Below, in pieces: positions 18,224-58,672 of a DNA stretch of 64,000 bases; position 1 is the stretch's first letter; every line of letters begins with the position of its first letter. The stretch covers positions 124,001 to 188,000 of the IMG/VR virus record IMGVR_UViG_3300035698_013060; one strand, 5' to 3'. Under the pieces are notes generated by a model, which worked only from the letters and a program-made list of their open reading frames with translations, was not told the DNA's origin and did no database searches. The position numbers were made by a program, and so were the translations under genes.

Positions 18224-19138
18224 TTACTTGTCGTCCTTGGCGCCCTTCTTACTTGCCGAAAGCAGCATTCGACCGGCCGTCGAAGCCTGGGAGATGGCGG
18301 TGCTGTAGGCACTCACAACGGCACCAGCAACACGCTGTTTCCCGGCCAGCGACTTCTTCAGACCTTCGATTTCGGTCTTGGCTTTGGCAGCATCATCGCC
18401 GCCCTTGGCTGCCGAGGAAGCACCGGCCTTGGCCAGGCGCTGTCCGTTCTTGGCGTCGGTACCAGCCGAAGCAACGATGTTCTTGACATGCGCCAAGTAC
18501 TTCGTCGAGCCACTGAGGACGATGGAAACGCCCTGGTCGGTGAACTCTTGTTCGCCTTCAGCACCAAGGATCTTGGCCTTGATCTGGCCAGCAGTCTGGG
18601 ACTCAGCGTCGGGAGCGCCGATGGTATCGATGCTTTTGACAGCGGCGATGAGTTCGTTCGCGACGTTGTTACCGTCTGCGACGTTTGCATTGCCGTTCAT
18701 CTTGATGGACTTCACAGTCACATCGCCACGCACACCGTTCCACCACTTCTCTTGATTGCCGAACTTGGAGAAGAGCTTGGCGACGGTCTTCTTGAACCAA
18801 CCGCTGATGGCGTTCCAGATCTTCATGAAGAAATCGCCGATCGACTTGAAGACTTCTTTCACGCCTTCATCCAAGATCGACTGGTCTTCGTTCACGATCG
18901 CCTGATGCTCAAGGCTCGCGGCGTCGTTAATGATGGCACCCCAGGCAGTCTCCATCTCGAGTGCGACTTCGAGGATACCTTCGGCTCCTTCGCCGAACAC
19001 ATCGTAGTCTTCCTCGCGGATGCCCATTTCCTCAGAGATGTCAGTCATCTCCTTGAAAATCGGATCCTTCAGCATTTCGTCGAGGTTCACAGCGAGTCCG
19101 CCGCCACCGTTGCTTTTTGATTCGTTCAAGAACAGCAT
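18224..19138 (-). CDS. internal head (ejection) protein with acidic propeptide
   Basis: MLFLNE start; acidic N-terminal region with LNE/ISE/ALE/SLE/LDE sites, then the amphipathic F.KIW.AI..WF helix typical of jumbo-phage head proteins. Confidence 0.7.
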   Translation of the reverse strand: MLFLNESKSNGGGGLAVNLDEMLKDPIFKEMTDISEEMGIREEDYDVFGEGAEGILEVALEMETAWGAIINDAASLEHQAIVNEDQSILDEGVKEVFKSIGDFFMKIWNAISGWFKKTVAKLFSKFGNQEKWWNGVRGDVTVKSIKMNGNANVADGNNVANELIAAVKSIDTIGAPDAESQTAGQIKAKILGAEGEQEFTDQGVSIVLSGSTKYLAHVKNIVASAGTDAKNGQRLAKAGASSAAKGGDDAAKAKTEIEGLKKSLAGKQRVAGAVVSAYSTAISQASTAGRMLLSASKKGAKDDK

Positions 19139-19325
19139 GGTCTTTTCTCCGTATCAAGGGTTCAGTAGAAAGTATACCCCCTAGCGGGTCCTCAGGCCTT
19201 TACCGGCCGGTGAACGCGTCTAGGGGGCTCTCGCCAAAAAATCTGTCAAGGAGAGCCAGGGTGCGAGTAGTGTCCCGGGGCTCCTGTGCGCGACTTTCAT
19301 CCGATGCCAGATCCGGTGTCAGTCG

Positions 19326-19364
19326 CATTGTCATGTTGGCCTCTCAAAAACCTAATTTGATGTT
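19326..19364 (-). promoter_or_regulatory. tandem late promoters AACA-TCAAAT-TA (19353-19364) and AACA-TGACAA-TG (19326-19337)
   Basis: two strict AACA-N6-TR matches. Confidence 0.65.
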
Positions 19365-19389
19365 AGTTCTTGGAGGTGGGATTCTTGTG

Positions 19390-20484
19390 TCAGATTAGGG
19401 GGGAGCCACCGGCCGATGCAGGGACGCTATCTTTCGGAACGTGTTCTGTGTTGACCTCTCTCCGTACTGTATCCTTTGAGGTCTTCTCTGCGATATCATT
19501 CTTCACAGAAATGTTGTCAGACAGTTTGGCCATCTGTTTTGCCAACTTAATCTGCTTCTGTTTTACGCCTCCACTCTTCTTAGTGGCAGCGTTGATTTCC
19601 AGAAATTGGGAGACGATCATGAACTCCCTACTGAAATGTCTCCGAAGATTGTAGAAGAAGATGATACTCTTGCGAACAAGATAGATGACGAAGAAGAATG
19701 CTGCAATCGCTGCAACGGTAACTCCGAGAATGGTTCCGAAGTCTTCGTTGACAGACTTCTGGTTCTCTTCATCATCGACCTCTTCACCAATTCCTCTGAG
19801 TTTTATCGGAGCCACCTTTATTGGCTCAACCATCATAGGATCAGTGCCGTCACCAAAAAGGGCTTTCTTACCCTTCTTCCCGGTCTTGATGAACTCAGCA
19901 ATCTTTCCAGACCTGAAAGCCTGGTTATAGTGATGAATGTCTTGGATGACATAGTTGGCCATCAGCCCCCTGTCTTCCATATAGGCAATCGTCATTCCAC
20001 TCTGATCGAGTTGAGTTCTCACTGAAGTAGAGATCGCCAAAACCGTTCCATAGAACAGACTCATGACCATCGATTGGTACAACCAGATTGCTAAGAGATT
20101 GTTCTCTCTGTAGGCCTTCTGGAAGTCGCTCGTATACTCCCTCATCTTTCCTTTCAGCATACTGAGCTCCATCAAGACCTGAGCCTGTCTCCTGGTGAGA
20201 TTCGTCATCGCATTGAGAGCGTCTTCTACGTTGTAGTAGTCCGGGACCTTGGTGATATCACCCTTGGATTTGTCAATCGATCTGGTATCGATGAGATCCT
20301 GCTTCGGAGCCGTTGTGGAAATCATCTTCCGAATCAGCATGTTCATCTGAGTGGTCTTGACTTCCTCGTCCAAGGCCACCAGTTTGTGCCTCTCATGAGG
20401 GCCTTCGCAAAGAAAGAACTCGAGAGACTCGTCTCTCGATGGGTTCTCTGGGAGGGTATATTCGTTTCCTGTAAGTCTGCTCAT
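19390..20484 (-). CDS. virion (head) protein with hydrophobic helix
   Basis: SKGDITK; SVNE followed by FGTILGVTVAAIAAFFFVIYLVR. Confidence 0.6.
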   Translation of the reverse strand: MSRLTGNEYTLPENPSRDESLEFFLCEGPHERHKLVALDEEVKTTQMNMLIRKMISTTAPKQDLIDTRSIDKSKGDITKVPDYYNVEDALNAMTNLTRRQAQVLMELSMLKGKMREYTSDFQKAYRENNLLAIWLYQSMVMSLFYGTVLAISTSVRTQLDQSGMTIAYMEDRGLMANYVIQDIHHYNQAFRSGKIAEFIKTGKKGKKALFGDGTDPMMVEPIKVAPIKLRGIGEEVDDEENQKSVNEDFGTILGVTVAAIAAFFFVIYLVRKSIIFFYNLRRHFSREFMIVSQFLEINAATKKSGGVKQKQIKLAKQMAKLSDNISVKNDIAEKTSKDTVRREVNTEHVPKDSVPASAGGSPLI

Positions 20485-20503
20485 TTTTCTATGCTCCCGT
20501 GCG

Positions 20504-21961
20504 TTACTTGGTCACCGCGAGGATGGTTTTGAGGAGGTCGCCTTGAGTAAGCTCCCTATCCTCCTTCTTGATGCCATCAATGCTCTTCACATCGAAGTCA
20601 GAGTCAGCCTCATCGTACCACCAGATCCTGTCATTTACTTCATCGATGATAACGAGGTTGAGAAGACTCAAGCTTTCGACAACTCCCTTAGCAGTACTAC
20701 TCTTGGAGAGATCGAACTTACCGTCAGTCTCCCGAAGCATTTCCTCGACGTCTTCCATGGAAACCGCCAAGGTGGCTGTGGACATGACGTCTCCACCAAT
20801 CATTCGTCTCATGCTGTTGTCAGACGTCAGGCGTTTCAGTTTGGCATACCAACCGTCTTTTCCAGCTTTCTCTTTACGGAAGCTATCTTTCACTTCCTTA
20901 AGGTTGAAGACGAAATCCTTGAAGAACTTGGTCTCACCAGTCCATAGACGGGCCAGTTTGATCAAGAAGCTCATATCGAACTTGGCCTTCGGGAGGAACT
21001 TCGTCATCTCAGTAGAGGGAACGATGTGGATCACGGTCTTGACCCCAAGAGTGAACTTGGTATTCTTGATGAAGCCGGGAGTATGGTACTCCACGTCGAC
21101 AGAGATCTTCAAGGGCTCAGCCTTGTTAGTTTTCTTTTCGACGTTAGCCCATGATGTCCCAATCTCACCTTTCACTCTAGCCATCTCAGCTCTGACGGCC
21201 TTCTCTTCGGCATCAGCTTCTGCTTCATCTCTCTCGACATTTTTCTTGGTGATTTCGATAGCGACTCTATCAGCAAGATAGGTATTGAGGAAATCGATGT
21301 CACGTTCGAGATTTACCTTCTTAGCCGGAGTGGTAGCGCGTGAATAAGATGCTTCCATCTTCAAGACCTCACGGCGAAGGACAGTCTCTGCAGTCTCTCC
21401 TTTTGGAAGCCTTGCTGCCTTTCCACCGGGTGTAGAAGGGATACCGATCATTTTCTCAATGTCAGCATATGTCAAAGGGGCTGCTTCAACGATGAGGATA
21501 TTTCCATCAATGTCGGTACAGTTGAGGCCGTTTCCGATCTCTTCTGAGAGATCAAATACGCCATCTCCATCAAGTAGAGACCTGAGTTCAGGAACATTCT
21601 CCCATCCCTCCAACTCGTCTCTGAGCATATCGAAGCCAGAGATCTTACTGATAAGCCCTTCTTTACTTTCACCTGTTTCAAGGTTGATGATACCGATTCG
21701 CTCGATCACCATTTTCACCAAGACTGCACTGCGATATTCGATTGCAGTGGCCAAAGCCGATGCCATCTCAAAATCACAGCTATCACTGATGATGAGAGGG
21801 AAGTGCATGATAGACTTCTTAGCGAGCCGACTGATACTTCGTCCCTCACCCTTGATACGCCTTCTCAGCGTATCGAGATTGACGTCAGGCTGCCAGACTT
21901 TATCCTTGAAGTGACCAGCCAGCTTCACAATATCGTTGATTATTCCGCCGTCGACTGCCAT
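20504..21961 (-). CDS. virion (head) structural protein
   Basis: SI..LAK.SIMHFP.IISD; GVKT.IH.V; TGE.KFFKDF; under a late promoter. Confidence 0.6.
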   Translation of the reverse strand: MAVDGGIINDIVKLAGHFKDKVWQPDVNLDTLRRRIKGEGRSISRLAKKSIMHFPLIISDSCDFEMASALATAIEYRSAVLVKMVIERIGIINLETGESKEGLISKISGFDMLRDELEGWENVPELRSLLDGDGVFDLSEEIGNGLNCTDIDGNILIVEAAPLTYADIEKMIGIPSTPGGKAARLPKGETAETVLRREVLKMEASYSRATTPAKKVNLERDIDFLNTYLADRVAIEITKKNVERDEAEADAEEKAVRAEMARVKGEIGTSWANVEKKTNKAEPLKISVDVEYHTPGFIKNTKFTLGVKTVIHIVPSTEMTKFLPKAKFDMSFLIKLARLWTGETKFFKDFVFNLKEVKDSFRKEKAGKDGWYAKLKRLTSDNSMRRMIGGDVMSTATLAVSMEDVEEMLRETDGKFDLSKSSTAKGVVESLSLLNLVIIDEVNDRIWWYDEADSDFDVKSIDGIKKEDRELTQGDLLKTILAVTK

Positions 21962-22008
21962 GATTTAATCTCTCCGATGTTTATATCCCAAGTATAGAGT
22001 TCTCATTG

Positions 22009-22020
22009 CAATAAGATGTT
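22009..22020 (-). promoter_or_regulatory. late promoter AACA-TCTTAT-TG
   Basis: strict match. Confidence 0.7.
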
Positions 22021-22035
22021 CTACCAGTTCGGAAG

Positions 22036-22081
22036 AAAAAAGAGGACTGATGGGGGAGGAGTGACCCTCCCCCACCGTCCT
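22036..22081 (-). terminator. terminator
   Basis: ggggagg..cctcccc stem followed by a U tract on the minus strand. Confidence 0.65.
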
Positions 22082-22230
22082 AGAATTCCTTGTCCCTAGC
22101 CCCCATTGGAACTGCGGCAGTTGATTGTATATCGGGCTCGGTCATAGACTGGCCCTTTGGGATGTTGTCTACCTCTCCTTCAGGGGGATTCGGGTCTTCC
22201 GGGATTTCGGCTCCCGTTGCCACGAACGAG

Positions 22231-22439
22231 TTACATTCTTCGACTGGATGCGAATCCCTCCTCTGATACTTCCCTGAAAGCAAATTTCAGGTGATCCGAT
22301 AGTGAGGGGCGCTTTTTCTCAATCCGAGAATGAAACTTGCGGTCGATCTCTTCTAATCTTTTTCCTTGCCTGAAGACGTTGAACATCTTCCTGGTGGCAG
22401 GGTCAGAATCGAAGTCGATTACCGCCTCCTTTCAGACAT
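22231..22439 (-). pseudogene. small early gene with a one-base frameshift near codon 3
   Basis: AAGGAGG SD plus ATG TCT GAA stops after 6 codons; the -1 frame reads KEAVIDFDSDPATRKMF...RRM. Confidence 0.45.
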
Positions 22440-22508
22440 GATCAGGGCCCTCCTTTGTTAGATCTTTTTGAACTGTCTAGGTAAGACTTAAACCCGTAAG
22501 CTATGACC

Positions 22509-22520
22509 TAATATATGTCT
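22509..22520 (-). promoter_or_regulatory. early promoter AGACATATATTA
   Basis: 12/12 identical to 14601-14612. Confidence 0.7.
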
Positions 22521-22550
22521 CTGTCACTTTTTGTCGTAGATCCATTCCGA

Positions 22551-22562
22551 AACAATCAATAG
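22551..22562 (+). promoter_or_regulatory. late promoter variant AACA-ATCAAT-AG
   Basis: upstream of the baseplate operon. Confidence 0.55.
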
Positions 22563-22602
22563 ACGGAGCTATAAAGAATGAACCGAGACAGGAGACCCAC
22601 CG

Positions 22603-23793
22603 ATGGCTGACGCGAATATCCATACCGGAACGGGTACCGTCAGGGGCGGGATTCAGCAGGACTCCCCGATAAAAGATTCGATGGACCCATCCCGGGTGTT
22701 AGACCCATTCAATGTATACAACAGGACTAGGACCCGTGGGGCCTGGAGAGAACCTGCTACCGGTCCAGTATGGTACGTTTTCATGACAGCTCCTAGCTGT
22801 AACCTGGCCGGACAGAACTTGAAAAACTACCGATACTTCCAGAAACTCTGGGAGGAACACGTAGAAGGGACTGTTACGTCTAGAGGTCGGGCTATCATAG
22901 AGGCTCTCTCGTTCGGTATCGAGGGAAAAGGCGTGTCCAGCATGATCAAACTGCTGACTAACACTGCCATGGGTTTCACTCCTGTAGATACAACCTCAAA
23001 TCCTCACACAATCGCTGAGACTTGGAACAAGCTCAAACATCAATATGCTGGTAATGATAACGACAGTAGGAGTGGTGGGTCATTCAGCATCGAGTATGAA
23101 GAGCTTCAAGGACTTCCCGTTCTGAATCTACACAAGTGCTGGTATGAATACATTCAGAAGGTGAAGAGTGGTAAGGTTCTCCCAGCTGAGTTCTTCCGGA
23201 CCAACCGGATCATAGACTACCAAACGTCTCTTTACTATTTCTTGATAGGACCAGATGGTGAATCCATTGAATTTTGGTCTAAGTTCACTGGGGTCTTTCC
23301 AACGGCGATGCCGTATAGTGCTATGGCCACAGGAGATGGTTCTCCTATCAAAATTTCAATCCCGTATGCCTTTGTGTACAAGGAAGACCTTGAGCCTGAG
23401 ATTTTAACAGACTTCAATGATTCCATCAAAGCCCAATCGGACAGGAATACGGTCTACGATGCTATCGTCTGGCCTGGAGTGTCTGTAGGGAACTTTGTTA
23501 AGGGATCAGGAAAGCTGGCATCTCGAGCAAAGGGAGAGACTTGGGATTGGATAACTGGTCTATTTGGAGCTGGAACAGAGTCATTCACTGATGAAACTTG
23601 GATCAAGCTGAGAGGAATCCAGCATAACGAGTATTCAGGTAGTGGTGGAACTGCTAAAGTTAGAGATGATGTCTTCGGCGCGAGCGCGGTGAAGGTGATC
23701 ATGAAGTCAAGGAACGGAGGCCCGGAAAGGCCCTGTTTAGTCTTCGACAATGTTGGGGATCCGAGCGAGAGTTCTGTACCCGCAATCATATGA
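22603..23793 (+). CDS. tail tube-fold baseplate protein (gp54-like)
   Basis: YVFMTAP.CNL, FSIEY.E, HK.W.EYI, IDY..S.YYF, K.TGVFP. Confidence 0.65.
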   Translation: MADANIHTGTGTVRGGIQQDSPIKDSMDPSRVLDPFNVYNRTRTRGAWREPATGPVWYVFMTAPSCNLAGQNLKNYRYFQKLWEEHVEGTVTSRGRAIIEALSFGIEGKGVSSMIKLLTNTAMGFTPVDTTSNPHTIAETWNKLKHQYAGNDNDSRSGGSFSIEYEELQGLPVLNLHKCWYEYIQKVKSGKVLPAEFFRTNRIIDYQTSLYYFLIGPDGESIEFWSKFTGVFPTAMPYSAMATGDGSPIKISIPYAFVYKEDLEPEILTDFNDSIKAQSDRNTVYDAIVWPGVSVGNFVKGSGKLASRAKGETWDWITGLFGAGTESFTDETWIKLRGIQHNEYSGSGGTAKVRDDVFGASAVKVIMKSRNGGPERPCLVFDNVGDPSESSVPAII

Positions 23794-23805
23794 ACGAGGT
23801 GAGAG

Positions 23806-26721
23806 ATGGCGACGACAACTGACACGACCCCAGTCGTCAGAGACGACACCTACGGGGTAGAAGAAGACCTCCTCAGCCTCGCGAAGACATTCTTCTTCGA
23901 CGAGAATGAGGATATTGCGATATCGACGTTGAAGCCTAGTATCTTTGGCTTCTTCGCACAAGCGGCGTCGACGATTGTAAAGACTGGAGTCTTCCACAGA
24001 AATGTTTTCTACGATGAGTTCTTTTTGAACACAGCTTCAATGGACTCCAGTATCTACAACTTTGCCAAGCTATACAATTACGAGGTGGCGAACGCCTTCT
24101 CGTCCAAAGTATATCTGTCCATGGCAATACGTGAGAGTGAGATACTGAAGTATAGTAATTTGAATCCCGATGACGACGGAGCAACAAGGCTGTTCAAAAT
24201 CAACAAGGCCACGAAGTTCGTCTTCGGTGAGTTTGAGTTCTTACTTCCATGCTCAGTTTTCGTCACCATCTCCAGGATGGATGAGTCTGTTCCCATTTCT
24301 GACTTCGCCAACAACAGATGGGTATTCCAGGCTCGTTACGACTTGAATGATTACAATCTCCAAGAGTACAAAACTACTAACCCGTACATCAAGATGTACA
24401 GCAATGTCATCGGCGGGGAGAAATGGTATATCTTCAAGCTCGAAGCTTGGCAGATGACCCTGAACGAGTACGTATTTGATGTACTCACTAGTGACGTTGA
24501 CCAACTTGTCTCGTACACGACAGAATTCGAAGACCAGTTGGCAGGATTCAAAGTAGAGGTCCAGGATCCAACAAGATCAACACCTGACTCTCAATACATG
24601 GAGATCTCTAAGGAATTCAATAACGCCGTTGCATTTACTGAGGATGGAGAACCTATCTCAGCAGCGGAAGAGGAAACCCTTACCGGGGACTACTACGACT
24701 GGACCAGACTGAGTTACTTCGCTTATCCGGCTGAAGAGTCCGTTCAGGTCTACTTCCCAACCCTCTCAGCAGAGAGACCTGGTTTTGGCTCGTCCGTTAG
24801 AATTAGAGTGTTCACTACCAAGGGCGTACTCGGTAATTTTCAGTATGATGGCAACATCGGCATTCAATTCGTGAGGGAAGAAGGAGATCCTAACTCTACT
24901 AGTGAGAAGGATAAGTCTGCGATGGAGGTCGTAGTCTCTAACCTATCAGATGCTGCTGGTGGTAAAGACAGACTCGGGGTTCTAGAGCTGAAACGGGAGC
25001 TGATTAAGAAAATCCTGGTCCGAAATAACTTGATCACTGAGAAAGACTTGGAGTATTTCTTCGAGAATCTCGTCGAGACCAGTTCGATCAATCAGGGTAA
25101 GTTAATGTTCGTCAAACAGAGAGACGACATTCTACGAAGGCTCTTCACAGTCTTCTTACTTCTAAGAGATGGTGATGGTAGGGTGGTCCCTACTAACACA
25201 GTGGACTTGAAGGCTGACTATGAATGGATCTCGTCCCGGGACTTTGTCATTAGACCCGGGGAGATCGTCGTATACGATCCGGACAGAGCTGGCTACAGAT
25301 TCCTACAGGAAGGAGAGTTTCCAGAGGCATATCTCGGAGACTCGAGATCCTTTGTCTATTCGATTCCTCATCTCATGTATGTGAAGCTAGACCCATTCCC
25401 ACGTATTGTCTATTATAGAACAACCGTGGCTAATGGGATTACTGTGGAGTTTGACCAGTACTCAGACTTCCGCTTCCCATTCGAAGTTATCGTCAACACT
25501 GTTAACGCTAGGCGTAACGGACTGTATGATAACTTCTACACGTTCTACTTGGACATGGCGACGAATATCGACGAAGACGAGAACTATCATCCCAATAACG
25601 CTGATATCTTGAAGTCCTCCAACATGAGAGTCGTGTTGGCCCTGAGAGATCGCTCCAGCAATGAAATCATCTGCTATGTCGCCCTTGGGAAAAAGAAAGG
25701 AAGCGACACTGAGTGGTTTGTCAAGATCGAGACTGAGGATGTTATCGTCAACGACACAGCTGGTGAAGGCCGGTTACAACTGGTTAATCCTTCTCTGACA
25801 GGAAATCTTCTGGACTCGGCTGGAAATCCATTAGCCTTGATCAATGTTCCAGAAGAGTTTGATATCGAAACTCTCGTACTGTATGATCCGTACGAAGTCG
25901 AGACTGTCGATAACGAGAGGGTGATGATCAACAAAGCCCAAGACAGTCGGAAGAACAGAGAAGACTATTTGGAACTAATGGAAGGTCTGTCGGACTCCAA
26001 ATGGTCTTGGAATGGAACCGAATGGTATTGGGATGGTAGTCCTTGGAACGGAGTTGATAGCGGGAGCTTCTTTGGGATGGTTGCAGTGTTTGTACACGCT
26101 AGCTCTGACTACTTCACTCTACATCAACCACTGGCCAATCTGATCTTGTCTGACATTCTACTCAACAGCGATGGTACGTTGGTCCTTAGGAGCGTCCCGA
26201 TTATCGGGACAAAGTACTTCTCAGACTACGATGCCAGTGTTGATGTCCATGAGACTCTTCAACAATATGAGGATATCCTTCGTTCTAACATGGCTCTATT
26301 GGAGAACAATACGCAAGTTAGCATGAAGTTCTTCAATACCTATGGAGTGGCGAGGCATCACAGTACAACCTCTTCCAACATCTTCATGGAGATCAAAATC
26401 AGGTTGGTTGGAACAGACACAAGCATCGACAGTGATATCATCGCAGCCATTGCGGCACATGTCGAGTCGTCCAATGATATCGGCGTACTCTCTATGTCGA
26501 ACGTTGTCACCATGTTGGAAACCACCTTCCCAGAGGTCAGGTTCATTAATGTGGTGGGGATGAATCAGTTGGGTCAACAGTCTATCGAGAGGACGAGCCC
26601 TGACGACCTATCTGAGATGACAAAGGAGGAGTTGGTGGCATACGTGCCTGAGTTCCTTAACTTGAATACCGAAGTGGTTGACAACAGACTGGCATACTCG
26701 GTGAAAATCGAACACATCTAG
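23806..26721 (+). CDS. baseplate wedge subunit (gp6-like)
   Basis: E.FLNTA...SIYN.AK, TTKG..GN, A.GGKD, LITE.DL. Confidence 0.8.
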   Translation: MATTTDTTPVVRDDTYGVEEDLLSLAKTFFFDENEDIAISTLKPSIFGFFAQAASTIVKTGVFHRNVFYDEFFLNTASMDSSIYNFAKLYNYEVANAFSSKVYLSMAIRESEILKYSNLNPDDDGATRLFKINKATKFVFGEFEFLLPCSVFVTISRMDESVPISDFANNRWVFQARYDLNDYNLQEYKTTNPYIKMYSNVIGGEKWYIFKLEAWQMTLNEYVFDVLTSDVDQLVSYTTEFEDQLAGFKVEVQDPTRSTPDSQYMEISKEFNNAVAFTEDGEPISAAEEETLTGDYYDWTRLSYFAYPAEESVQVYFPTLSAERPGFGSSVRIRVFTTKGVLGNFQYDGNIGIQFVREEGDPNSTSEKDKSAMEVVVSNLSDAAGGKDRLGVLELKRELIKKILVRNNLITEKDLEYFFENLVETSSINQGKLMFVKQRDDILRRLFTVFLLLRDGDGRVVPTNTVDLKADYEWISSRDFVIRPGEIVVYDPDRAGYRFLQEGEFPEAYLGDSRSFVYSIPHLMYVKLDPFPRIVYYRTTVANGITVEFDQYSDFRFPFEVIVNTVNARRNGLYDNFYTFYLDMATNIDEDENYHPNNADILKSSNMRVVLALRDRSSNEIICYVALGKKKGSDTEWFVKIETEDVIVNDTAGEGRLQLVNPSLTGNLLDSAGNPLALINVPEEFDIETLVLYDPYEVETVDNERVMINKAQDSRKNREDYLELMEGLSDSKWSWNGTEWYWDGSPWNGVDSGSFFGMVAVFVHASSDYFTLHQPLANLILSDILLNSDGTLVLRSVPIIGTKYFSDYDASVDVHETLQQYEDILRSNMALLENNTQVSMKFFNTYGVARHHSTTSSNIFMEIKIRLVGTDTSIDSDIIAAIAAHVESSNDIGVLSMSNVVTMLETTFPEVRFINVVGMNQLGQQSIERTSPDDLSEMTKEELVAYVPEFLNLNTEVVDNRLAYSVKIEHI

Positions 26722-26733
26722 GCCATCGACAGT

Positions 26734-26745
26734 AACATAGAATTA
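26734..26745 (+). promoter_or_regulatory. late promoter AACA-TAGAAT-TA
   Basis: strict match. Confidence 0.7.
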
Positions 26746-26804
26746 AACGTACTAAATCACCTGCCGTGGCGCGGGCTGTGAAGAAAAGAAAGAGGAACAC
26801 TGAA

Positions 26805-27662: not shown

Positions 27663-27682
27663 GATTGGTCCAGAAACGATTA

Positions 27683-27718
27683 CAAAGGGGCTAACGGCAA
27701 TGCCGTTAGCCTCCTTTG
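27683..27718. terminator. bidirectional terminator
   Basis: ggctaacggca-a-tgccgttagcc between convergent genes. Confidence 0.8.
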
Positions 27719-27737
27719 CTTCCTCGACGAGAGCTTC

Positions 27738-28241
27738 TTAGCTCTTCTTTTTCTTCTTGGTCTTGGGCTTATCATCAGAGATCCGAGGTTCAGGAGAATC
27801 GGTTTCCTCGACGGTCTCGGGAACAGGAGTTACCGGAGTTTCGACTACACCAGCCCCAGGAGGAACCGTGATATTCGCCTGGTCTTGAACGTCTGCCTTG
27901 TCCTCGACCTTCTTCGGAGCGGGGATCTGAGCCATCTTCTGTTGCTGCTGAAGCTGCGCGGCCGGGACTGTAACCAGCTTGTGGTGGTCGATGAGATTGT
28001 CCACCATCGTTCTGGCAAAGCTCATGACGTCCATCGTCGTGCGCATCAACCAGTTGTACTTGATGTACATGTCAGCGTTCCGCTTCTCCAGGTGAGGAGC
28101 GATGAACAACAGGTGTGCAGTTCCCTTGTCCTCTTCCTTTGAGTCTTCTACCCTTCCGGCGCAGATGACGTAGTCGAGACCGAATTCTTCGCAGAGTTCG
28201 ATAAGCTTCTTACGGGCTACGGTGACCTGTTCTGCCTTCAT
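27738..28241 (-). CDS. hypothetical protein (167 aa)
   Basis: AAGGAG SD. Confidence 0.75.
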   Translation of the reverse strand: MKAEQVTVARKKLIELCEEFGLDYVICAGRVEDSKEEDKGTAHLLFIAPHLEKRNADMYIKYNWLMRTTMDVMSFARTMVDNLIDHHKLVTVPAAQLQQQQKMAQIPAPKKVEDKADVQDQANITVPPGAGVVETPVTPVPETVEETDSPEPRISDDKPKTKKKKKS

Positions 28242-28270
28242 TCCGATTTGTCTCCTTCGTTTTTCTTTCT

Positions 28271-31349: not shown

Positions 31350-31889
31350 CTATATGTCCAGTCTGTCCTGTCGGTACTCCATGTAAACCTCTACTCGGGG
31401 CTTTTGGCTGTAAAACTTCTCACAACTCTCAAGAGTACACTGGTTGTCATCAACCCAGACCACCCCTTTCATCGCATCCAGTATGGACTTGACGTAGTTG
31501 TCGGTATCGGGGGTCTTCTCTGGTTGGAGATGACCTCTCTCCATGAGAACAAGTCTCGATCTAGCTGTGCCTTTCGGTGGCATCTTGAAGACCTCAGCCC
31601 ATACCCTGATCTGTCCCTGGATTGGTATGTAGTCCTCCGGGAGCTCTCTCCTGAGATAGTTCTGGAGTCCAGTCTGCCACTTTTCCAAGTCCTTGTCAAC
31701 GTACTTCCATCTAGCCCCATCCTTGTGCCTTTTGTACTGGACACACGGTCCAATGAGGACAAAGTCAAACGAGAACCAAGGGTTGTTCTCCTCCCAGTCG
31801 GTCCACATCTTGTCAGCCCGCGCCACGTCCTTATGATCGAACGTTGCCAGGACGGTTTTTCTTATAGCCGCGCCCTGTTCTGTCAACAT
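31350..31889 (-). CDS. rusA: RusA-family Holliday junction resolvase
   Basis: KTPDTDNYVKSILDAM..V.W.DDNQ, K.Y...PRVEV. Confidence 0.9.
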   Translation of the reverse strand: MLTEQGAAIRKTVLATFDHKDVARADKMWTDWEENNPWFSFDFVLIGPCVQYKRHKDGARWKYVDKDLEKWQTGLQNYLRRELPEDYIPIQGQIRVWAEVFKMPPKGTARSRLVLMERGHLQPEKTPDTDNYVKSILDAMKGVVWVDDNQCTLESCEKFYSQKPRVEVYMEYRQDRLDI

Positions 31890-50336: not shown

Positions 50337-50351
50337 CGGCGCGCTCCCGCT

Positions 50352-51296: not shown

Positions 51297-51351
51297 GGCT
51301 CTTCTCTCTTCTTTGTCTGGGTTGCTTGCCAACCATTTATTCTGTTCGGAT

Positions 51352-51363
51352 TAATTCCTTGTT
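51352..51363 (-). promoter_or_regulatory. late promoter AACA-AGGAAT-TA
   Basis: strict match. Confidence 0.7.
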
Positions 51364-51414
51364 CCGCCGACGTGCGTCCTTCATGTGCTCAGAGTCCTTA
51401 GTAACGTCCGTCAT

Positions 51415-51427
51415 AAACCAATATTAC
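51415..51427 (+). promoter_or_regulatory. early promoter variant AAACCAATATTAC
   Basis: ATATTAC core heading the replication operon. Confidence 0.5.
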
Positions 51428-51584
51428 GAGGGTGTATCGTAAGGCCTGGAATCTTCCTCCGGTAGTAAACAGCCGGTGGAGACGACTGGGATCAGATGGA
51501 CGGACTTGAAGCGGGTCCGGCCTAGTGGCCGAAGAGCTCGCCAAGAAACTAGGTATTGGCTAAAACCCGAGAAAGGAGGCGCTA

Positions 51585-52820
51585 ATGTTTTTGATTGCCA
51601 AGAATAGAAAAGATTTCGTCAAGACCTTGATAGCTGAGGTAGAGACCGCTAGGTCGGAGAGGAGCTTCGCTAAAAGAGTAAAGGGTCTTAAAAGGCTGGC
51701 ATTCCTGGACTTGAGTAAGTTTCGGGTGACCGGGACTGACAGGACAGAACCTTCATTCAAACGCATCCGTTTCAAGGTGACCCCTCAGAAGGTGGCGACT
51801 CATACAGTCAGCCTTGTGACAGGTCCGGAGACGTACAGATGTATCGCAGCCCATGGAATCGAAAGGATCGTCAGGGCTTTCTTTGTCGACCACCATATCA
51901 GAAAGGTCATTGAACTGATTGTGAAAGGTGATGAGGTCTTAGCAGAAGCCATCCGCCGAGGCCGATGTTACATGGACATGTGGGATCACAACTCAGAAGA
52001 TCTGGAAGATAACGATAGAGTCAGTCTACTCCCAGTGGACGTACTTGGTCCGGAAAACCAGATAATGATCACAGGAGAGATGCCCTCTACATACCTGAAG
52101 GATCTGAGCTTGTTGGCCGTATTCTACTCAGTAGTACACGGACGTCCACAGATACCTCTTGGAATTTACAAAGTAACCTCCACAGAGGCAGAGACTGCTG
52201 AGACTCCTCCTGAAGTTGATGCCAGAGGGTTTGTCCCGTTTATCATTGAGCCCAGACTCGAAACCTTCAAGCCGTTCGAGAAAGAAACTATACACGAGAA
52301 ACTGTTCAACGCAAGTCTAGGTAACACTTACTTTGCGAAGTCAGGACTGTTGTGTACGATCGGTAAGGTTATCATGGAAAACATCCAGAGTAGCGAAGTA
52401 CTTAAGAGAGTACTCATCCTGCTGTGCAGCCTTACTGGAACTCATGATGATGAGGATATTGTATTTGATCTGATAAGGAAGACCCTTGGATTCCTTGAAA
52501 GTACCCTAGACTATGAGATCAAGAATCTTACCTTCACAGGAAAGAGACGGATCACTAACAGGGTGTTCTACAACACCATGGCTGATTTGGAGGATGAAAC
52601 TCTGTTCTCTATAGCCAAGGATCCTGGGATGCTCCGAGTGGTGGATGAGTTCGGGGTAGAGAACCAGAATGTCCAACAGTACATCCTCCGGGAACAGATT
52701 CGAAGGTTCCGCAACCGCCCAGAGCTCGATGAAAATGTGAGACACCTGATGAACAGGCTTGACTTCGGAGGGAAGCAATCTCTAATGGAGTTAGCATTCC
52801 TAAAAGAAAGGAAGATATGA
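51585..52820 (+). CDS. hypothetical protein (411 aa)
   Basis: AAAGGAGG SD. Confidence 0.8.
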   Translation: MFLIAKNRKDFVKTLIAEVETARSERSFAKRVKGLKRLAFLDLSKFRVTGTDRTEPSFKRIRFKVTPQKVATHTVSLVTGPETYRCIAAHGIERIVRAFFVDHHIRKVIELIVKGDEVLAEAIRRGRCYMDMWDHNSEDLEDNDRVSLLPVDVLGPENQIMITGEMPSTYLKDLSLLAVFYSVVHGRPQIPLGIYKVTSTEAETAETPPEVDARGFVPFIIEPRLETFKPFEKETIHEKLFNASLGNTYFAKSGLLCTIGKVIMENIQSSEVLKRVLILLCSLTGTHDDEDIVFDLIRKTLGFLESTLDYEIKNLTFTGKRRITNRVFYNTMADLEDETLFSIAKDPGMLRVVDEFGVENQNVQQYILREQIRRFRNRPELDENVRHLMNRLDFGGKQSLMELAFLKERKI

Positions 52821-53023
52821 AGAAGTTGATCATTGCAACGATCGTGATTGTAGTGTCCTTGTGCGTAGTCCTTCCTCTCGCGACAGGCTTTTTACAGGCT
52901 GCCAGAGAAGAACAAACGTCATGGGATCGTTACGTAGCGGCAGCACTAACCAACGGTTAAAGTCCTGAGAAGGCGGCCATTATAGCCGACAAGACTTTAT
53001 CAGAAAAAAGGAGAAGATTCTAA
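52817..53023 (+). pseudogene. membrane-anchored small gene interrupted by an in-frame TAA (52958-52960)
   Basis: ATGA overlap at the start and TAATG overlap at the end; reads WDRYVAAALTNG*SPEKAAIIADKTLSEKRRRF. Confidence 0.65.
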
Positions 53024-53604
53024 TGAGTAAATTCCCTGAAGTTGAAGAAATGCTGAGACAGATGGTGTTCTTTGACACCGAAACGTCTGGCCTGTTGGAT
53101 TACAAGCACGAGATCATTCAGATCGGTGCTATATCCGGTAACAGTGAGTTCGAAGTCAAGTTACGCTTCGACATGGACAAGGCTGACCCGAAAGCCTTGG
53201 AGATGAATTGTTACAACGAGGATGTTTGGGCCGAGGAAGCCGTGGATCCCGAGGAAGCGATGAACGCATTCTCGGAGTTCCTGGAAGACTTCAAGTTTGT
53301 AGGAAAAGTCGGTAAGAAGTCCGGAAAGCCTTACAAAGTTGCTAGACTTGTAGGTCACAATGCATCTACGTTCGATAAGGGCTTCATGATGGCTCTCTAC
53401 AGAACTTATGATGCCTTTATGCCGTTCGAGTTCAAGATCTGGGATACTCAACAGTTGGCTATGTGGAGCCTTCCAGACGCTGAGCATCACAAGCTCGAGG
53501 TTCTGTGTGAGTACTACAACATTGACATCGGCAATGCTCATGACGCTCTAGCTGATGCGATCGCCACTCGACGGGTAGCTTGGTGTCTCATGACTGAGGA
53601 GTGA
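53023..53604 (+). CDS. DEDDh 3'-5' exonuclease (DnaQ-like)
   Basis: FFDTETSG, GHNA.FD, DT, AHDALADA. Confidence 0.93.
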   Translation: MSKFPEVEEMLRQMVFFDTETSGLLDYKHEIIQIGAISGNSEFEVKLRFDMDKADPKALEMNCYNEDVWAEEAVDPEEAMNAFSEFLEDFKFVGKVGKKSGKPYKVARLVGHNASTFDKGFMMALYRTYDAFMPFEFKIWDTQQLAMWSLPDAEHHKLEVLCEYYNIDIGNAHDALADAIATRRVAWCLMTEE

Positions 53605-53609
53605 GACGA

Positions 53610-53810
53610 GTGAAGACGTACATTATTTACCATGAAATGGGCCTCTGCCAAGATATTATCGTCAGTGACGAGTCGGAAGCTGATTCCGAAAAAAGACTGG
53701 CCTGAATCAAATCACGTTCTGACTTTCAAGTCATTGCCGTGATAAGAGGAATACTCATGGAAGGACATGAAGCATGCCTGAATCAACGAAAGACGACGGA
53801 CCCGTCATAG
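53610..53810 (+). pseudogene. small ORF with an in-frame TGA (53703-53705)
   Basis: GAGGAG SD plus GTG; MKTYIIYHE...EKRLA*IKSRSDFQVIAVIRG... Confidence 0.4.
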
Positions 53811-53983
53811 GGACGTTTGTAGTACATGCTCTCAAAAGTCGTGTGAGAACGCGAGATGAATTAAACGGGGATGGTAAAAGGTTCTGTGTTACCCCTCTTG
53901 AAGGGAAGCACCTGAAGCCATACTCCGAGTACTACGGCAACCTGGATCAATTCAAAAGTGTCTGGGGAGAACCCATAGACTAG
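53774..53983 (+). CDS. hypothetical protein (69 aa)
   Basis: AAGGA SD; operon context. Confidence 0.6.
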   Translation: MPESTKDDGPVIGTFVVHALKSRVRTRDELNGDGKRFCVTPLEGKHLKPYSEYYGNLDQFKSVWGEPID

Positions 53984-53993
53984 AGGAGAAACT

Positions 53994-55175
53994 ATGACAA
54001 ATGATGGAAAGATGTTGATATACATCGTGAGTGATATCCACTTTCACGACACGATTGCTAGAAGGCTCTATGAAGAGCTAGAGGGTAGCTTCCTGCATCA
54101 CTTGGAACAGGAAGCTCCGGAAGTCGATATGGTGGTAATTGCCGGAGACCTCTTTGACCGCAAGGTCATGTTCAACTCCGATGCTGCCATGTTGGCATTG
54201 AAGTTCGTAGGACGCATCGTTGACCTCATGCATGATGATCTCACTGATGGCCACAAGCCAGTCAGAATCCTCAAGGGTACCAGGACACACGACCACGACC
54301 TCTTAAACACGTTCAATTTCATGGACAAGGGAAAGAATGTTGAGGTAGTGAATACCATCACAGGTGAAGAAGTGGTCCCTCACTTCAACGTACTGTATAT
54401 CCCTGAGGAATATCCTGTCGATTGGCAGGAGTACTATTCAGACTGGTTGGCCTGTACTGAGACGGAGATAGAAGCTGAGTCGGAGAGTCCGGCCTGGGAT
54501 GTGATCTTCCTTCACGGGATGATCGACTTTGAGGCCCACTCTTCGATCGTCATCGACTCGGAAAGGCCGGTCCACTCAGCCCCAGTGTTCCCCACTGACG
54601 TACTACTAGCCAGCGGCTACGTGACTATCGCAGGTCATGTCCATGTCCCTAGTTCCAGGCAGGACAGGATCTTCTATTGCGGTTCGTACACGCGCTTCGC
54701 CTATGGTGAAGATCACCCAAAAGGCTGGATTAGACTCGAGTACGACGCTGAAATTGGAGCATCCAAGGTTCTCAGGATCGAGAACACGGCTGCCCCTGAG
54801 TACAAGACTGTGCGTCTGTCTGAAGTCTATGATCCTGAAGCGGATGTGGATGAGAACGTTAAGTCCATCCAAGAAGTCGCCGAAGGTATCCATCTCAGGC
54901 TTGACGTTGACATGGAGCAGGGAGAAAAAGTGAGAAGCGACCTAGCTGTAGTCAGAGAGCGGTTTGCTGATGACGATAGGTTGAAATTGAAGATAGATAG
55001 GCGAGGAGTCCTCCCGAAACCGGAAGACTCAGAAGACCAGCGAACCGAGTTCCTAGCTAAGCCAGGTACCACGGTGGCAGAAGCTGTCCACGGCTACGTT
55101 GGAGTCACGTCGCCTGATGTGTCGATCACCCTGGACGAGGTCAAGCAAATCATCAGTCCTGAAAAGGAATCTTGA
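53994..55175 (+). CDS. SbcD/Mre11-like metallophosphoesterase nuclease
   Basis: SDIH, AGDLFD, GTRTHD, LHG, GHVH, YCGS. Confidence 0.9.
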   Translation: MTNDGKMLIYIVSDIHFHDTIARRLYEELEGSFLHHLEQEAPEVDMVVIAGDLFDRKVMFNSDAAMLALKFVGRIVDLMHDDLTDGHKPVRILKGTRTHDHDLLNTFNFMDKGKNVEVVNTITGEEVVPHFNVLYIPEEYPVDWQEYYSDWLACTETEIEAESESPAWDVIFLHGMIDFEAHSSIVIDSERPVHSAPVFPTDVLLASGYVTIAGHVHVPSSRQDRIFYCGSYTRFAYGEDHPKGWIRLEYDAEIGASKVLRIENTAAPEYKTVRLSEVYDPEADVDENVKSIQEVAEGIHLRLDVDMEQGEKVRSDLAVVRERFADDDRLKLKIDRRGVLPKPEDSEDQRTEFLAKPGTTVAEAVHGYVGVTSPDVSITLDEVKQIISPEKES

Positions 55176-55248
55176 AGCTGAGACGCTCCGACCAATAACC
55201 AAATGGGGCAAGAGAGTCTCAGATAGAATAATAAAGGAGAAGTTGCCT

Positions 55249-57000
55249 GTGGCGAAAAAACAAGACAGAAAACACCTCCAAATGGTAGCCGATAACCTGG
55301 CTGTTGGCTTCTTAGAGACCGTGGTGTTCTACTTGATGTCGAGCAACCTCTCAATCAACCGCCGGTCGATGAGGAGGGTTAAGGAGTTTTTCGAGCTCTT
55401 CGAGCCCGACGACTTCGCTCGAAGTAGAGATCGCGAGGTCAGGTTTCACCTAATCCAGAGGCTGGCAGCTGCCAGGGTCGATAAAAGACTGGATGATCCT
55501 AACAACATCCTCCAGGCATGCCTCGACGGATCTAGTTATGATGATGAAGTCAACGCAGTCTTCGACGAGTTTGACGAGATCGGGGAGATTGGTAACGATG
55601 ACGTCAACTTTGTCGATGAGACGATAGCGGCGAGATTGAAGTTCGCTAACTTCTCTAACGTGGCTGGGAGACTGCAGGACGTAGTAATTAGGTACCAGAA
55701 TAACGAATTCCGGAACTTGATGACGTTCATGGAAGAAGAATTGAGTCCAGTAGTAGCTGAAGCAAATGCTGAGCTCAGACGAGTACAGGTATCTGGTAAA
55801 GAATCTGCACTGGACTTCGACATGAGTCGTGAGAGTCTCATGAATATCTATACTCACACGATTGATGTTAGGAATCGTGGAGGCTCCTGTATCACAACTG
55901 GAGTCCAGATGCTCAATGAAATGCTTGGTGGAAATGGTTTTGAAGCTCCAAGAGTTTATACAGCTCTAGGTGCTAGTGGAAAATGGAAGTCTGGATTCCT
56001 CTTCAATGCGTCGATGTGGTCCAAGAAGTACAACGCTAATACAGAATGCATGGATCCGACGAAGAAGCCCTGTACTCTATTCATGAATCTGGAGAATGAC
56101 AATCCGGAGACGGCTGAACGGATGCTATCATACGTCGTGAACGACGGTGATATGCAACATGCAGACGTAAGAGAATGGGATGCTTCAGATCTGGTGGACC
56201 AGATCGTTGACGAAGGGGTCGGTCACGAGGATGATAGTGAAGACTACCAGATATTCTACCGCTACAAATCCAACAGATCGATTGACGCCAATGACATCGA
56301 GGGAATAATTGAAGAACTTGCTGAAGATGGATATGAGGTCAGATTCCTGATCATTGACTATCTACGCAGGCTCAACTCCGTGACCAGAGAGACAGAGGAA
56401 AGATTCAGGTTGGCATCAATCGTTGATCAACTGAAAACCCTTGCTATTGCACATTGCATCCCTGTGCTCACAGCAGCTCAGTTGAATCGGACGGCTATGG
56501 CCATCATCGAGGAGATGTCCGAGAAAGGACATGGTAACATCGGACAGAAACTCATGAGCAGCCAGATCGGAGAGGCCTGGGGTATCATGGAGAACTCCGA
56601 TATGTGCATCATTGGAAATCCTGAGACGGTCATAACTGGTAGGAAGGAGATTAAGTACTACACGTTCAAGCGATGTAAGATGCGCGGGAGAGAGAAAGGT
56701 CCAAGCTATTTCGCGCATCCATACGTCTCGGGGAACGATATGCGCCTGATAGAGGATATCGATGAGGCTAAACCGCTTTCTGAGATGAATCTAAAGGACA
56801 GTTTCCCTGATGCCGCTTCACTTCCATCAGACGACGCCTCTGACCCGAGTAGCAACATAGTCAGTCGTAAAAAGAACAAGATGGTGAAGGGAAGAGAACA
56901 GAAGGAGAAACCTCCAAAGAAAAAGAAAGAACAGAATGGAGTCGTTGACGGGTTCCTGGGTGAAAATGAAGGAAAGTTTTTACTACCTGAAGAGAAATGA
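55249..57000 (+). CDS. DnaB-like replicative helicase
   Basis: TGV..LN.MLGG.G, Walker A GASGKWKS, LEN, IIDYL, TAAQLNR, K.R; start set at GTG after AAGGAG. Confidence 0.9.
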   Translation: MAKKQDRKHLQMVADNLAVGFLETVVFYLMSSNLSINRRSMRRVKEFFELFEPDDFARSRDREVRFHLIQRLAAARVDKRLDDPNNILQACLDGSSYDDEVNAVFDEFDEIGEIGNDDVNFVDETIAARLKFANFSNVAGRLQDVVIRYQNNEFRNLMTFMEEELSPVVAEANAELRRVQVSGKESALDFDMSRESLMNIYTHTIDVRNRGGSCITTGVQMLNEMLGGNGFEAPRVYTALGASGKWKSGFLFNASMWSKKYNANTECMDPTKKPCTLFMNLENDNPETAERMLSYVVNDGDMQHADVREWDASDLVDQIVDEGVGHEDDSEDYQIFYRYKSNRSIDANDIEGIIEELAEDGYEVRFLIIDYLRRLNSVTRETEERFRLASIVDQLKTLAIAHCIPVLTAAQLNRTAMAIIEEMSEKGHGNIGQKLMSSQIGEAWGIMENSDMCIIGNPETVITGRKEIKYYTFKRCKMRGREKGPSYFAHPYVSGNDMRLIEDIDEAKPLSEMNLKDSFPDAASLPSDDASDPSSNIVSRKKNKMVKGREQKEKPPKKKKEQNGVVDGFLGENEGKFLLPEEK

Positions 57001-57045
57001 GACAAGCCCCATACGCTTCGGCGTATGGGGCTTGTCGTCTTTTTC
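57001..57045. terminator. terminator with cUUCGg tetraloop
   Basis: gacaagccccatacgc-ttcg-gcgtatggggcttgtc plus T tract. Confidence 0.9.
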
Positions 57046-57051
57046 TTCTCT

Positions 57052-57522
57052 TTACAGGTCGACGTCGATCGGAGTCAAGGTCCTATCAGATACGTCAGTA
57101 GGAGTTTTTCGGCTAACCTCGATCTCTTCTCTAGCCTTATTCACTGATCTCAAGAAGTTACCAACGAACCTAGGAGGTACCACTTTGATAGTACCAACAA
57201 CGAGTTCTGTTGGCCTGAACATGTTGTTGCCCCTAAGAACCATGTACCATAGGTCAGGTGTACCATAAAGAGCCTCAGAGACAGATTCAGGTCTGTATTG
57301 GAGTGTCTCATCCACCTCAAAATCGTCCATAAAAGCAAAGAGTGTCCGCATCTCTTCATGAAGAATACCGTGGGGTTCGCTCATTACGAAAAGCCCCTTG
57401 AAGAAGATCTTCATTGAAGTATTATTCAACGCCAAAGTATTGTCTTTGGAGTGGTCGACACTATCAGCGATGTCGGTGAATCGCCCCGAGTTAAATCTCG
57501 GGTTACTAGGTATATCTGCCAT
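57052..57522 (-). CDS. baseplate wedge protein, gp53/LysM-like
   Basis: YRPE.VS..LYGTPDLWY.VL..N. Confidence 0.8.
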   Translation of the reverse strand: MADIPSNPRFNSGRFTDIADSVDHSKDNTLALNNTSMKIFFKGLFVMSEPHGILHEEMRTLFAFMDDFEVDETLQYRPESVSEALYGTPDLWYMVLRGNNMFRPTELVVGTIKVVPPRFVGNFLRSVNKAREEIEVSRKTPTDVSDRTLTPIDVDL

Positions 57523-57525
57523 TCA

Positions 57526-58119
57526 TCACCTCTTCAGGTATTCCTTGACATGAGACTCCATTTGATGGTGGTCCCAGTAGCGGCTCTCCTCAAGGATAAA
57601 CCGCCTCAGTTGATTCTTATTCTCCAAAGCTTTCTCAGCAGCATTTGGAGCTAAGGCATCATCAAAGAACCTCACTCGGTTCACTGCCATACCATATTCT
57701 CTCATCATCGGAGTTATCAAGAAATTGGCAATTCCTTGGAGCATCCTCCTATCAGGAACACCCTCCCTAAAGTCATCATTCAAGACGATCAGTATGTCGT
57801 CCTTTCTACCATGCGGGATAGCTCCAGTGGCAGCTAGTTCATAGAGAAACCAAGAGACTTGGCTCCTTCCTATCCCGGAAAAGAAAACATAATCATCTTC
57901 AAGAAACTCAACGTAAAAATGGCAAGGAGGTTGACTAGCTTGAAGGTCTTCGTAGAAGTACCGTTGGTACTTGCCCCACGAATATCTATAGGAACTCCGG
58001 AGCATCCTAGGCTCCCAAACTGTTCCTCTGACCATGAGGTTGTGGAGCGGGACCAGAAGAATCCCAGTAGGCTCTCTGACCCGCTTCCACTTCTTGTCGT
58101 TGAGTATCGTGTTTCTCAC
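57526..58119 (-). CDS. amidase_2-like fold protein (likely non-catalytic)
   Basis: PPCHFYV and I.I.L..DF....P pattern; Zn ligands incomplete. Confidence 0.45.
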   Translation of the reverse strand: MRNTILNDKKWKRVREPTGILLVPLHNLMVRGTVWEPRMLRSSYRYSWGKYQRYFYEDLQASQPPCHFYVEFLEDDYVFFSGIGRSQVSWFLYELAATGAIPHGRKDDILIVLNDDFREGVPDRRMLQGIANFLITPMMREYGMAVNRVRFFDDALAPNAAEKALENKNQLRRFILEESRYWDHHQMESHVKEYLKR

Positions 58120-58120
58120 G

Positions 58121-58672
58121 TTATCCCTTGATGGACTGGTAGAACTGTTCCTTCATGGCAGCCACTTCGGCCTTGCGCTTCGGATCCTTGGTCGCTTTCT
58201 CGAGGTCATCCAAAGCTCTTTCTGCTTTCTTGACCTGCTTCGTGGCGTCCTTGCTGGCGAAGAAAGCTGCAGTCCCTACTCCAACGAGCGCGATCATGTT
58301 CAAGGTCAGACCGTAAATGGAGTAGAAGAAAGCGAGAACGAGAGCAGCTTGGAGAGCACCGATGGTAGCCAGAATGGCGACCATGATATATACTCCAACC
58401 GGAACGAGAAGCAAAGCGATTGTCGCCTTTTGAACTCCATCAGCTGTCTTATTGGCCTTCTTAGCCTTCGACATAAAGTCGTAGACCTTCGCTCCGAGGA
58501 CGTCGATGGATTCTTCGGTGAGAACTCCATTCTCGACAATGAGCGAACCCTTTTCAAAGGGCTCCAACTCAGCATCTTCCATAAGAGTTCTACCCTCTTC
58601 TGATTCGAAGAAGACCACACACTCTTCAATGGACAGATTGGCTTCACCGGCAGTTCCTTGGTAAAACAGCAT
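58121..58672 (-). CDS. head/ejection protein with MLFY leader, acidic propeptide and hydrophobic helices
   Basis: AGGAG SD; SIEE/LME/IVE/LTEE sites; roughly 60-aa hydrophobic segment. Confidence 0.65.
   Translation of the reverse strand: MLFYQGTAGEANLSIEECVVFFESEEGRTLMEDAELEPFEKGSLIVENGVLTEESIDVLGAKVYDFMSKAKKANKTADGVQKATIALLLVPVGVYIMVAILATIGALQAALVLAFFYSIYGLTLNMIALVGVGTAAFFASKDATKQVKKAERALDDLEKATKDPKRKAEVAAMKEQFYQSIKG

Follow-up and report, generated by a model that had tools for sequence, protein, structure and literature searches.

A short N-terminal leader shared by ten proteins of an uncultivated jumbo phage, a candidate signal for incorporation into the virion

In a stretch of 64,000 nucleotides of the virus record IMGVR_UViG_3300035698_013060 (241,176 bp; positions 124,001 to 188,000, referred to here as the window), four genes, named P0001 to P0004, begin with a similar short peptide, and six more genes with such a start lie outside the window. 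To judge from its codons, the leader, M-[L/I]-F-[Y/L]-[D/E/N/Q], is conserved at the peptide level. We propose that it would mark a group of late proteins associated with the virion of a jumbo phage related to AR9 and phiKZ, and we see about an even chance that it is a virion-incorporation leader that resembles the capsid-targeting sequence (CTS) of phage T4 and is cut after a nearby Glu.

The analysis covered 181.7 kb of the record, assembled outward from the window, that is, about 76% of the genome, with 203 called genes; the same phage has also been assembled as an ENA contig of 237,607 bp. By its window genes, it is an uncultivated jumbo myophage and a distant kin (about 30% amino-acid identity) of AR9/PBS1, BpSp, phiR1-37 and the Staphylococcus jumbo phages. 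These genes include those of a tail sheath, a 2889-aa tape-measure-like protein and baseplate wedge proteins, as well as GroEL, split RNA polymerase subunits, a primase and a RusA resolvase. A DNA-level search of the deposited phage collection revealed no close relative of the window.

Ten genes with a common start

A sequence-only reading of the window had listed four open reading frames (ORFs) with these starts, each preceded by a Shine-Dalgarno site, and all four were confirmed on the minus strand (Table 1). The leader Met is the first ATG, GTG or TTG past the upstream stop in every one of them, and a GGAG-type Shine-Dalgarno site is located 6-10 nucleotides 5' of each. Public gene callers independently placed the same start in all six extra carriers. 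The further claim that the bodies are unrelated stood for the four window genes, among which BLASTP found no similarity, but it did not hold genome-wide, since the ten carriers include two paralogous pairs. P0004 and P0019 align end to end with 25% identity (E = 1e-4), and both retain MLFYQ exactly; gene D was linked to the P0001 family by hhalign (probability 84%, E = 7.6e-6). Beyond these pairs, no similarity was detected by BLASTP among the six carrier bodies compared, a set from which A, B and C were left out. Like the T4 CTS, the leader is a short N-terminal peptide common to several proteins that show no kinship in their mature parts.

The count of M[LI]F[YL] N-termini that had been suggested as a check was run on the 203 genes. 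Ten start in this way, against 0.13 expected from the internal tripeptide frequency (Poisson P ~4e-16), and eight start with MLFY, for which the frequency of LFY predicts 0.023 (P ~2e-18). When residues 2-4 were shuffled 20,000 times with their columns preserved, the largest class held at most five members, compared with the eight observed. With less sequence the result had been weaker (P = 0.046 on 88 kb under a conservative column shuffle, 0.006 on 145 kb), so that the signal grew with sampling. All ten carriers have D, E, N or Q as residue 5, as do 26% of the other genes, and the starts MLFYNS and MLFYQD are each found twice among the carriers. The hydrophobic or small-x-E sites noticed soon after the leader in the window genes also proved to be enriched across the whole set: [LIVAGS]-x-E ending at residues 6-13 is present in 8 of 10 carriers and in 45 of the 193 other genes (23%; Fisher P = 4e-4).

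The second codon of the carriers is CTT, CTG, CTC, TTA or ATC, their Phe codon is TTT or TTC, and the regions 5' of the genes have only the Shine-Dalgarno site in common. In the orthologues of P0001, found on contigs of 28-61% GC, M-L/I-F-L-N-E is kept with nearly every codon changed. Since the leader varies synonymously, it is the peptide that is under selection.

Past the leader, P0003 has a basic Gly-rich stretch and then a CxxC...CxxC zinc ribbon, and P0004 combines an acidic N-terminal part (about 75 aa) with hydrophobic transmembrane segments and a charged helix at the C-terminus. P0074 lies about 3.9-4.7 kb past the right end of the window; its leader opens an N-terminal extension of about 110 aa, and the protein carries the motifs of PrsW-like metalloproteases (EExxKR and HxxxN) and matches a viral cluster of 80 members in the ESM Atlas with a score of 0.91. 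The same search with P0004 gave no match, and word-indexed searches, IMG/VR scans and tblastn for homologues of P0002, P0004 and P0074 returned only the proteins themselves.

Seven of the ten carriers are translationally coupled to virion-structure operons. P0003 starts 12 nucleotides past the gene of a 454-aa virion protein and P0002 starts 9 nucleotides past rusA, both of these ORFans standing behind the tape-measure gene; P0004 comes after a gene for a possible gp6-like protein, and gene D stands directly 3' of one whose product is similar to a virion RNA polymerase subunit. In three relatives (L005, L007 and L008; 45-50% identity), the corresponding region is otherwise syntenic but lacks P0002 and P0003, which are, on this comparison of gene order, lineage-specific insertions. 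That P0002 might be the split-off N-terminus of its 470-aa neighbour was rejected because a 330-aa gene is the N-terminal orthologue of that neighbour.

Another candidate, an in-frame MLFYDP within a UvsX-like ATPase, was judged to be internal and not a start. Two looser look-alike starts, MFLIAK and MFLGNW, were not counted as carriers; they resemble the MFLxE form of the leader in the P0001 family.

The P0001 family and its kinship

An exhaustive phmmer search gave 50 homologues of P0001, of about 300 aa and 24-40% identity, and a metagenome scan with a 10-sequence alignment of the family gave five loci only. P0001 matches phrog_26049, the family of AR9 g216 and PBS1 gp107 (E = 3.3e-7), and members of the P0001 family match AR9 g216 at 3e-11 over 90% of the length. 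By these matches, P0001 belongs to the AR9 g216/PBS1 gp107 family, whose two named members are annotated "virion protein" and "virion structural protein", respectively. The start of AR9 g216 is MKNLFLLEDVE and that of BpSp gp272, another member, is MKSLFFEDTE. Nearly all of the about 50 homologues retain M(L/I)FLxE, MFLxE or MxxLF(L/F)xE, for example MLFLNE, MIFLNE or MSLFFE, such that the leader is the best-conserved N-terminal element of P0001.

In a 44-sequence alignment of the family, the near-invariant residues are limited to E6, E61 and E77. The AlphaFold2 model of P0001 consists of long helices (predicted local distance difference test, pLDDT, 89; predicted template modelling score, pTM, 0.84) and places E61 and E77 within a long helix. 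Only residues 1-15 are disordered in the model, and the leader with E6 would therefore be accessible. The P0001 gene and the two conserved virion-protein genes 5' of it, coding for 364 aa and 485 aa, stay together as a trio in all relatives examined (AR9, BpSp, L013 and L014). Two observations on relatives, a tandem duplicate of the gene and an insertion of mobile-element genes near its cluster, are given in Table 1.

The kinship of P0001 to the internal head proteins of phiKZ appears weak but consistent, judging from profiles, a modelled fold and gene neighbours. In the family, 22 of 44 members match PF12699 (phiKZ_IP) at E <= 1, the best at 9.9e-7, in a constant register. Members checked singly scored 10.6-21.3 bits, below the Pfam gathering cut-off of 27, and P0001 itself gave no PF12699 match; its membership of pfam12699 is thus not secure on the profile scores. 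A Foldseek search of BFVD with the P0001 model retrieved the AR9 paralogues g217 and g096 first and then many phiKZ-like virion or internal head proteins, at E of about 1e-2 to 1e-3 and probability above 0.9. A PDB sequence search with the family returned only coiled-coil noise. Among the neighbours, a 396-aa protein has phiKZ gp88 as a weak match (E = 3e-6) and the 485-aa protein likewise has the phiKZ head protein gp89 (E = 9e-6); as gp88 and gp89 flank the internal-protein (IP) genes in phiKZ, P0001 occupies a comparable position beside gp88/gp89-like genes. A 971-aa protein (phrog_18960) has the same length, position and orientation as phiKZ gp87 relative to these genes; by BLASTP, it shows no similarity to gp87, nor does the 364-aa protein to gp90.

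Table 1. Carriers of the leader and other features of the phage and its relatives. Positions without a handle are those of the window; elsewhere the handle of the locus (L) precedes them.
Feature	Location	Strand	Length	Start or remark
P0001	18224-19138	minus	304 aa	MLFLNESKS
P0001 leader codons	19121-19138	minus		ATG CTG TTC TTG AAC GAA
P0002	30945-31340	minus	131 aa	MIFYEKAEEP; acidic ORFan
P0003	31894-32106	minus	70 aa	MLFYNSDIIEEA (leader MLFYNSDIIEE)
P0004	58121-58672	minus	183 aa	MLFYQGTAGEA
P0019	L009:19781-20401		206 aa	MLFYQDQDGLDE; distant paralogue of P0004
P0074	L018:10515-11369	minus	284 aa	MLFYNSTPDV; PrsW-like intramembrane protease body
A	L030:8195-8740		181 aa	MLFYDTDILQE; 3' of actin-like gene
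B	L031:11720-11851		43 aa	MLFYDRNVIG
C	L031:11918-12268		116 aa	MLFYESRSVE
D	L031:14162-15298		378 aa	MLFYQDRIKPALE (MLFYQD); second P0001-family member
Look-alike start	51585-52820	plus		MFLIAK
Look-alike start	L019:17310-19334	minus		MFLGNW; tail-fibre-like repeat protein
Virion-protein genes 5' of P0001	19390-21961	minus	364 aa and 485 aa	AR9 g215 and g214
971-aa protein (phrog_18960)	23806-26721		971 aa
RusA resolvase	31350-31889	minus		between P0003 and P0002; context only, outside the leader set
GroEL-type chaperonin	9115-10821			same relative position in AR9 (g228) and relative L013
Tandem duplicate of IP-like gene	L033:1720-2634 and 2824-2940			both start MIFLNEDTQYISSDNDSA; relative of 28% GC
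Resolvase/MerR gene and IS605 OrfB/TnpB (Cas12f-like)	L014:4044-5859			inserted a few kb 5' of the IP-like gene cluster
Actin-like gene (Pfam Volactin)	L030:7141-8190		349 aa	4 nt 5' of carrier A
Reverse transcriptase (Pfam RVT_1)	L031:6326-8014		562 aa	beyond the window, at about window coordinates 101,800-103,500
Fused SAICAR synthase/AIR carboxylase and at least three RCC1-repeat (WD40_RLD) proteins	L009:11992-13365; L012:18426-19661; L019:13972-15342; L021:8770-9948			auxiliary

Virion incorporation and competing explanations

We infer targeting, cleavage and ejection of the leader-bearing proteins as the most likely course of events. The leader would direct its carriers into the assembling particle, either the prohead core or some other interior part of the virion that ejects its contents, and a morphogenetic protease of the T4 gp21 type would probably remove it after a nearby Glu, at [L/I/A/S/G]-x-E at residues 6-13. 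It appears to be ancestral to the internal-head-protein-like family formed by P0001, gene D and AR9 g216. In this lineage, it would have spread to at least eight other proteins, among them a zinc ribbon, small ORFans, two hairpin membrane proteins and the PrsW-like protease, which would be cargo on the same route. Less probable, although still a serious possibility in our view, is a genome-wide N-terminal sorting code that would have arisen independently of the T4 CTS, in which MLFY plus an amide or acid residue would load at least ten unrelated proteins into the virion for co-injection, hairpin membrane proteins, the PrsW-like protease and the zinc-ribbon protein among them.

Leaders of this kind are known from T4, where ten N-terminal residues of IPIII are enough for packaging, with positions 4 and 7 needed for targeting and positions 8 and 10 for gp21 cleavage, and where the CTS is believed to enable T4-like phages to take in a variety of proteins (PMC9026906). 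The T4 leaders (on IPI, IPII, IPIII and Alt; removed by gp21) and the MLFY leader are both short, N-terminal and followed by unrelated mature parts. In the T4 record, IPII and IPIII start with MKTYQEFIAE and IPI with MKTFKEFTS; an aromatic residue 4 is followed there by Q or K, as MLFY is followed here by Q, N, D or E, and both leaders have a hydrophobic-x-Glu near residue 10. Small genes restricted to single lineages, of cargo in T4 and of candidate cargo here, are dispersed over the genomes of both phages. The two leaders nevertheless have no sequence homology, and here it is residues 2-5 that are conserved, with the distance to the Glu varying from 6 to 18. Unlike T4, the phage has membrane proteins among its carriers and is an AR9/phiKZ-related jumbo phage, not a member of the Straboviridae. 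Targeting and cleavage have been demonstrated for the T4 CTS; for the MLFY leader, they are proposed here.

A second precedent is found in the giant phages, whose pfam12699 proteins occur in abundance as internal or ejection proteins and have long acidic propeptides; the first 15 residues are common to SPN3US gp53 and gp54, with sites AxE-12 and SxE-15, and phiKZ gp93 is cut at SLE-13 (PMC5694885). The internal head proteins of phiKZ and SPN3US are known for short conserved leaders with x-x-E at the end, at which the prohead protease cleaves. The starts of phiKZ gp93, gp94 and gp95 are MSLLKMLDKLSLE, MNLNKLLDSLE and MTFKLNEYLDSLE, with a common leader that ends in SLE. In the pfam12699 proteins as a group (phiKZ gp93-95, SPN3US gp53 and gp54), a short conserved N-terminus ending in S/A-x-E, as in MSLLKMLDKLSLE, MNLNKLLDSLE and MANFVKSKLARESVE, precedes the acidic propeptide. 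The P0001 family resembles them through the weak Pfam and fold links and the similar gene neighbours. The motif differs, being LF[LY] here and LDxLSLE in the phiKZ-type leaders, and the phiKZ/SPN3US leader is limited to one paralogue family whereas the one described here is also present on at least eight proteins outside the P0001 family. Encapsulin cargo-loading peptides offer a more remote likeness, as a short terminal peptide routes unrelated cargo into an HK97-fold shell; in contrast to what we propose for the MLFY leader, they usually stand at the C-terminus, are retained and attach directly to the shell protein. The leader had been called undescribed in the sequence-only reading; the MLFY motif was indeed not mentioned in the literature searched, but the principle was already familiar from T4 and the phiKZ gp93-95 family.

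Several results weigh against virion incorporation. Polytopic membrane proteins, including the PrsW-like intramembrane protease, account for three of the ten carriers and would be an unusual cargo for a capsid interior, and most carriers have tail and baseplate genes around them. Part of the Glu-site enrichment could stem from the N-termini of the carriers, which tend to be acidic over residues 5-40. Capsid, portal, terminase and protease genes, including one for a gp21-like prohead protease, were not found in the 181.7 kb by tblastx with AR9 genes (first 145 kb) and PHROG scans of selected larger proteins; AR9, a relative of the phage, encodes a T4-gp21-like "prohead core scaffold protein and protease", g114. 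In a genome-wide check of the AR9 proteins annotated as virion proteins, the leader was present on g216, loosely on g217 and on no other, and about 110 kb of relatives' contigs showed it on P0001 orthologues only; the spread beyond the P0001 family is therefore lineage-specific as far as sampled. The PF12699 link is below threshold for most P0001-family members, and hhalign of the family against five phiKZ proteins was not significant (probability 1%). The earlier idea of a portable packaging tag, with which our proposal agrees in kind, is partly supported: in its favour are the peptide-level leader on many unrelated proteins, the virion-family homology of P0001 with its well-conserved leader, the enriched Glu sites and the parallel with T4, and against it are the leaderless AR9 virion proteins, the three membrane carriers and the tail and baseplate setting.

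The same membrane carriers would fit an N-terminal recognition signal for another process, such as membrane or compartment sorting, regulated turnover as a degron for a host or phage protease, or hand-off to a chaperone, and the carriers have no visible link to head genes. The phage has its own GroEL-type chaperonin, and the N-terminus of the T4 major head protein is reported to direct proteins to GroEL. As for turnover, L, F and Y are bulky residues of the type favoured by bacterial N-end-rule adaptors; Met-Leu, however, is not a substrate of methionine aminopeptidase, and L, F and Y would therefore not be exposed at the N-terminus. The leader offers only three hydrophobic residues, followed by D, E, N or Q and a net-negative stretch, with no Cys lipobox and no twin-Arg; since it has neither a basic n-region nor a hydrophobic core and is followed by acidic residues, it is no Sec, Tat or lipoprotein signal. 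Moreover, the oldest carriers, those of the P0001 family, are soluble, helical and annotated as virion proteins. On balance, we regard a signal for another process as rather unlikely.

Still less probable is that the leader is a footprint of descent, a 5' gene end copied over and over by duplication or recombination and kept for efficient initiation or a stable N-terminus, with no role in sorting. The two paralogous pairs, the repeated MLFYNS and MLFYQD starts, the insertion of P0002 and P0003 in this lineage and the tandem duplicate with the same leader in L033 speak for it. The similarity nonetheless ends after 4-6 residues and the codons differ, so that no DNA cassette is shared. The leader also persists where the rest has diverged, as the exact MLFYQ in paralogues of 25% identity and the P0001 leader in about 50 homologues of 24-40% identity, with its near-invariant E6, both illustrate; such persistence reflects purifying selection on the peptide and not inertia.

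Conservation of an RNA element and not of a peptide, in the form of a translational operator or enhancer across AUG-YUN-UUY-UAC that a RegA-like repressor or the ribosome would read, seems very improbable to us. The element is located on the initiation region, all nine Tyr codons are TAC (63% genome-wide), and Phe is encoded by TTT in six of ten carriers in spite of a preference for TTC (71%). Such a sequence would nevertheless have to accommodate five codons at position 2, an upstream likeness limited to the Shine-Dalgarno site, P0001 orthologues that keep the peptide through almost complete codon replacement, and a residue 5 kept by chemical class (D/E/N/Q) and not by nucleotide. Chance coincidence, which four genes and a motif defined after the fact had left open at P = 0.046 on 88 kb, is refuted by the ten genes in 181.7 kb, by shuffles that never reached the observed count (0 of 20,000), by Poisson values of about 1e-16 to 1e-18 and by the deep conservation of the motif in the P0001 family.

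Meaning for jumbo phages

The phage is uncultivated and, as far as sampled, the leader extends beyond one family only in this lineage. Should the leader prove to be a packaging tag, the internal or injected proteins of a jumbo phage lineage could be listed from sequence, which at present is possible only by virion proteomics. If a sorting code is in operation, the tag alone would list the injected effectors and would provide a minimal handle to load foreign cargo. Virion incorporation through this leader would also mean that the strategy of T4, one short leader for many cargoes, arose again in unrelated giant phages with a far shorter motif, and it would bring out cargo of an unusual kind, membrane proteins together with an intramembrane protease, with a possible action on the host envelope during entry.

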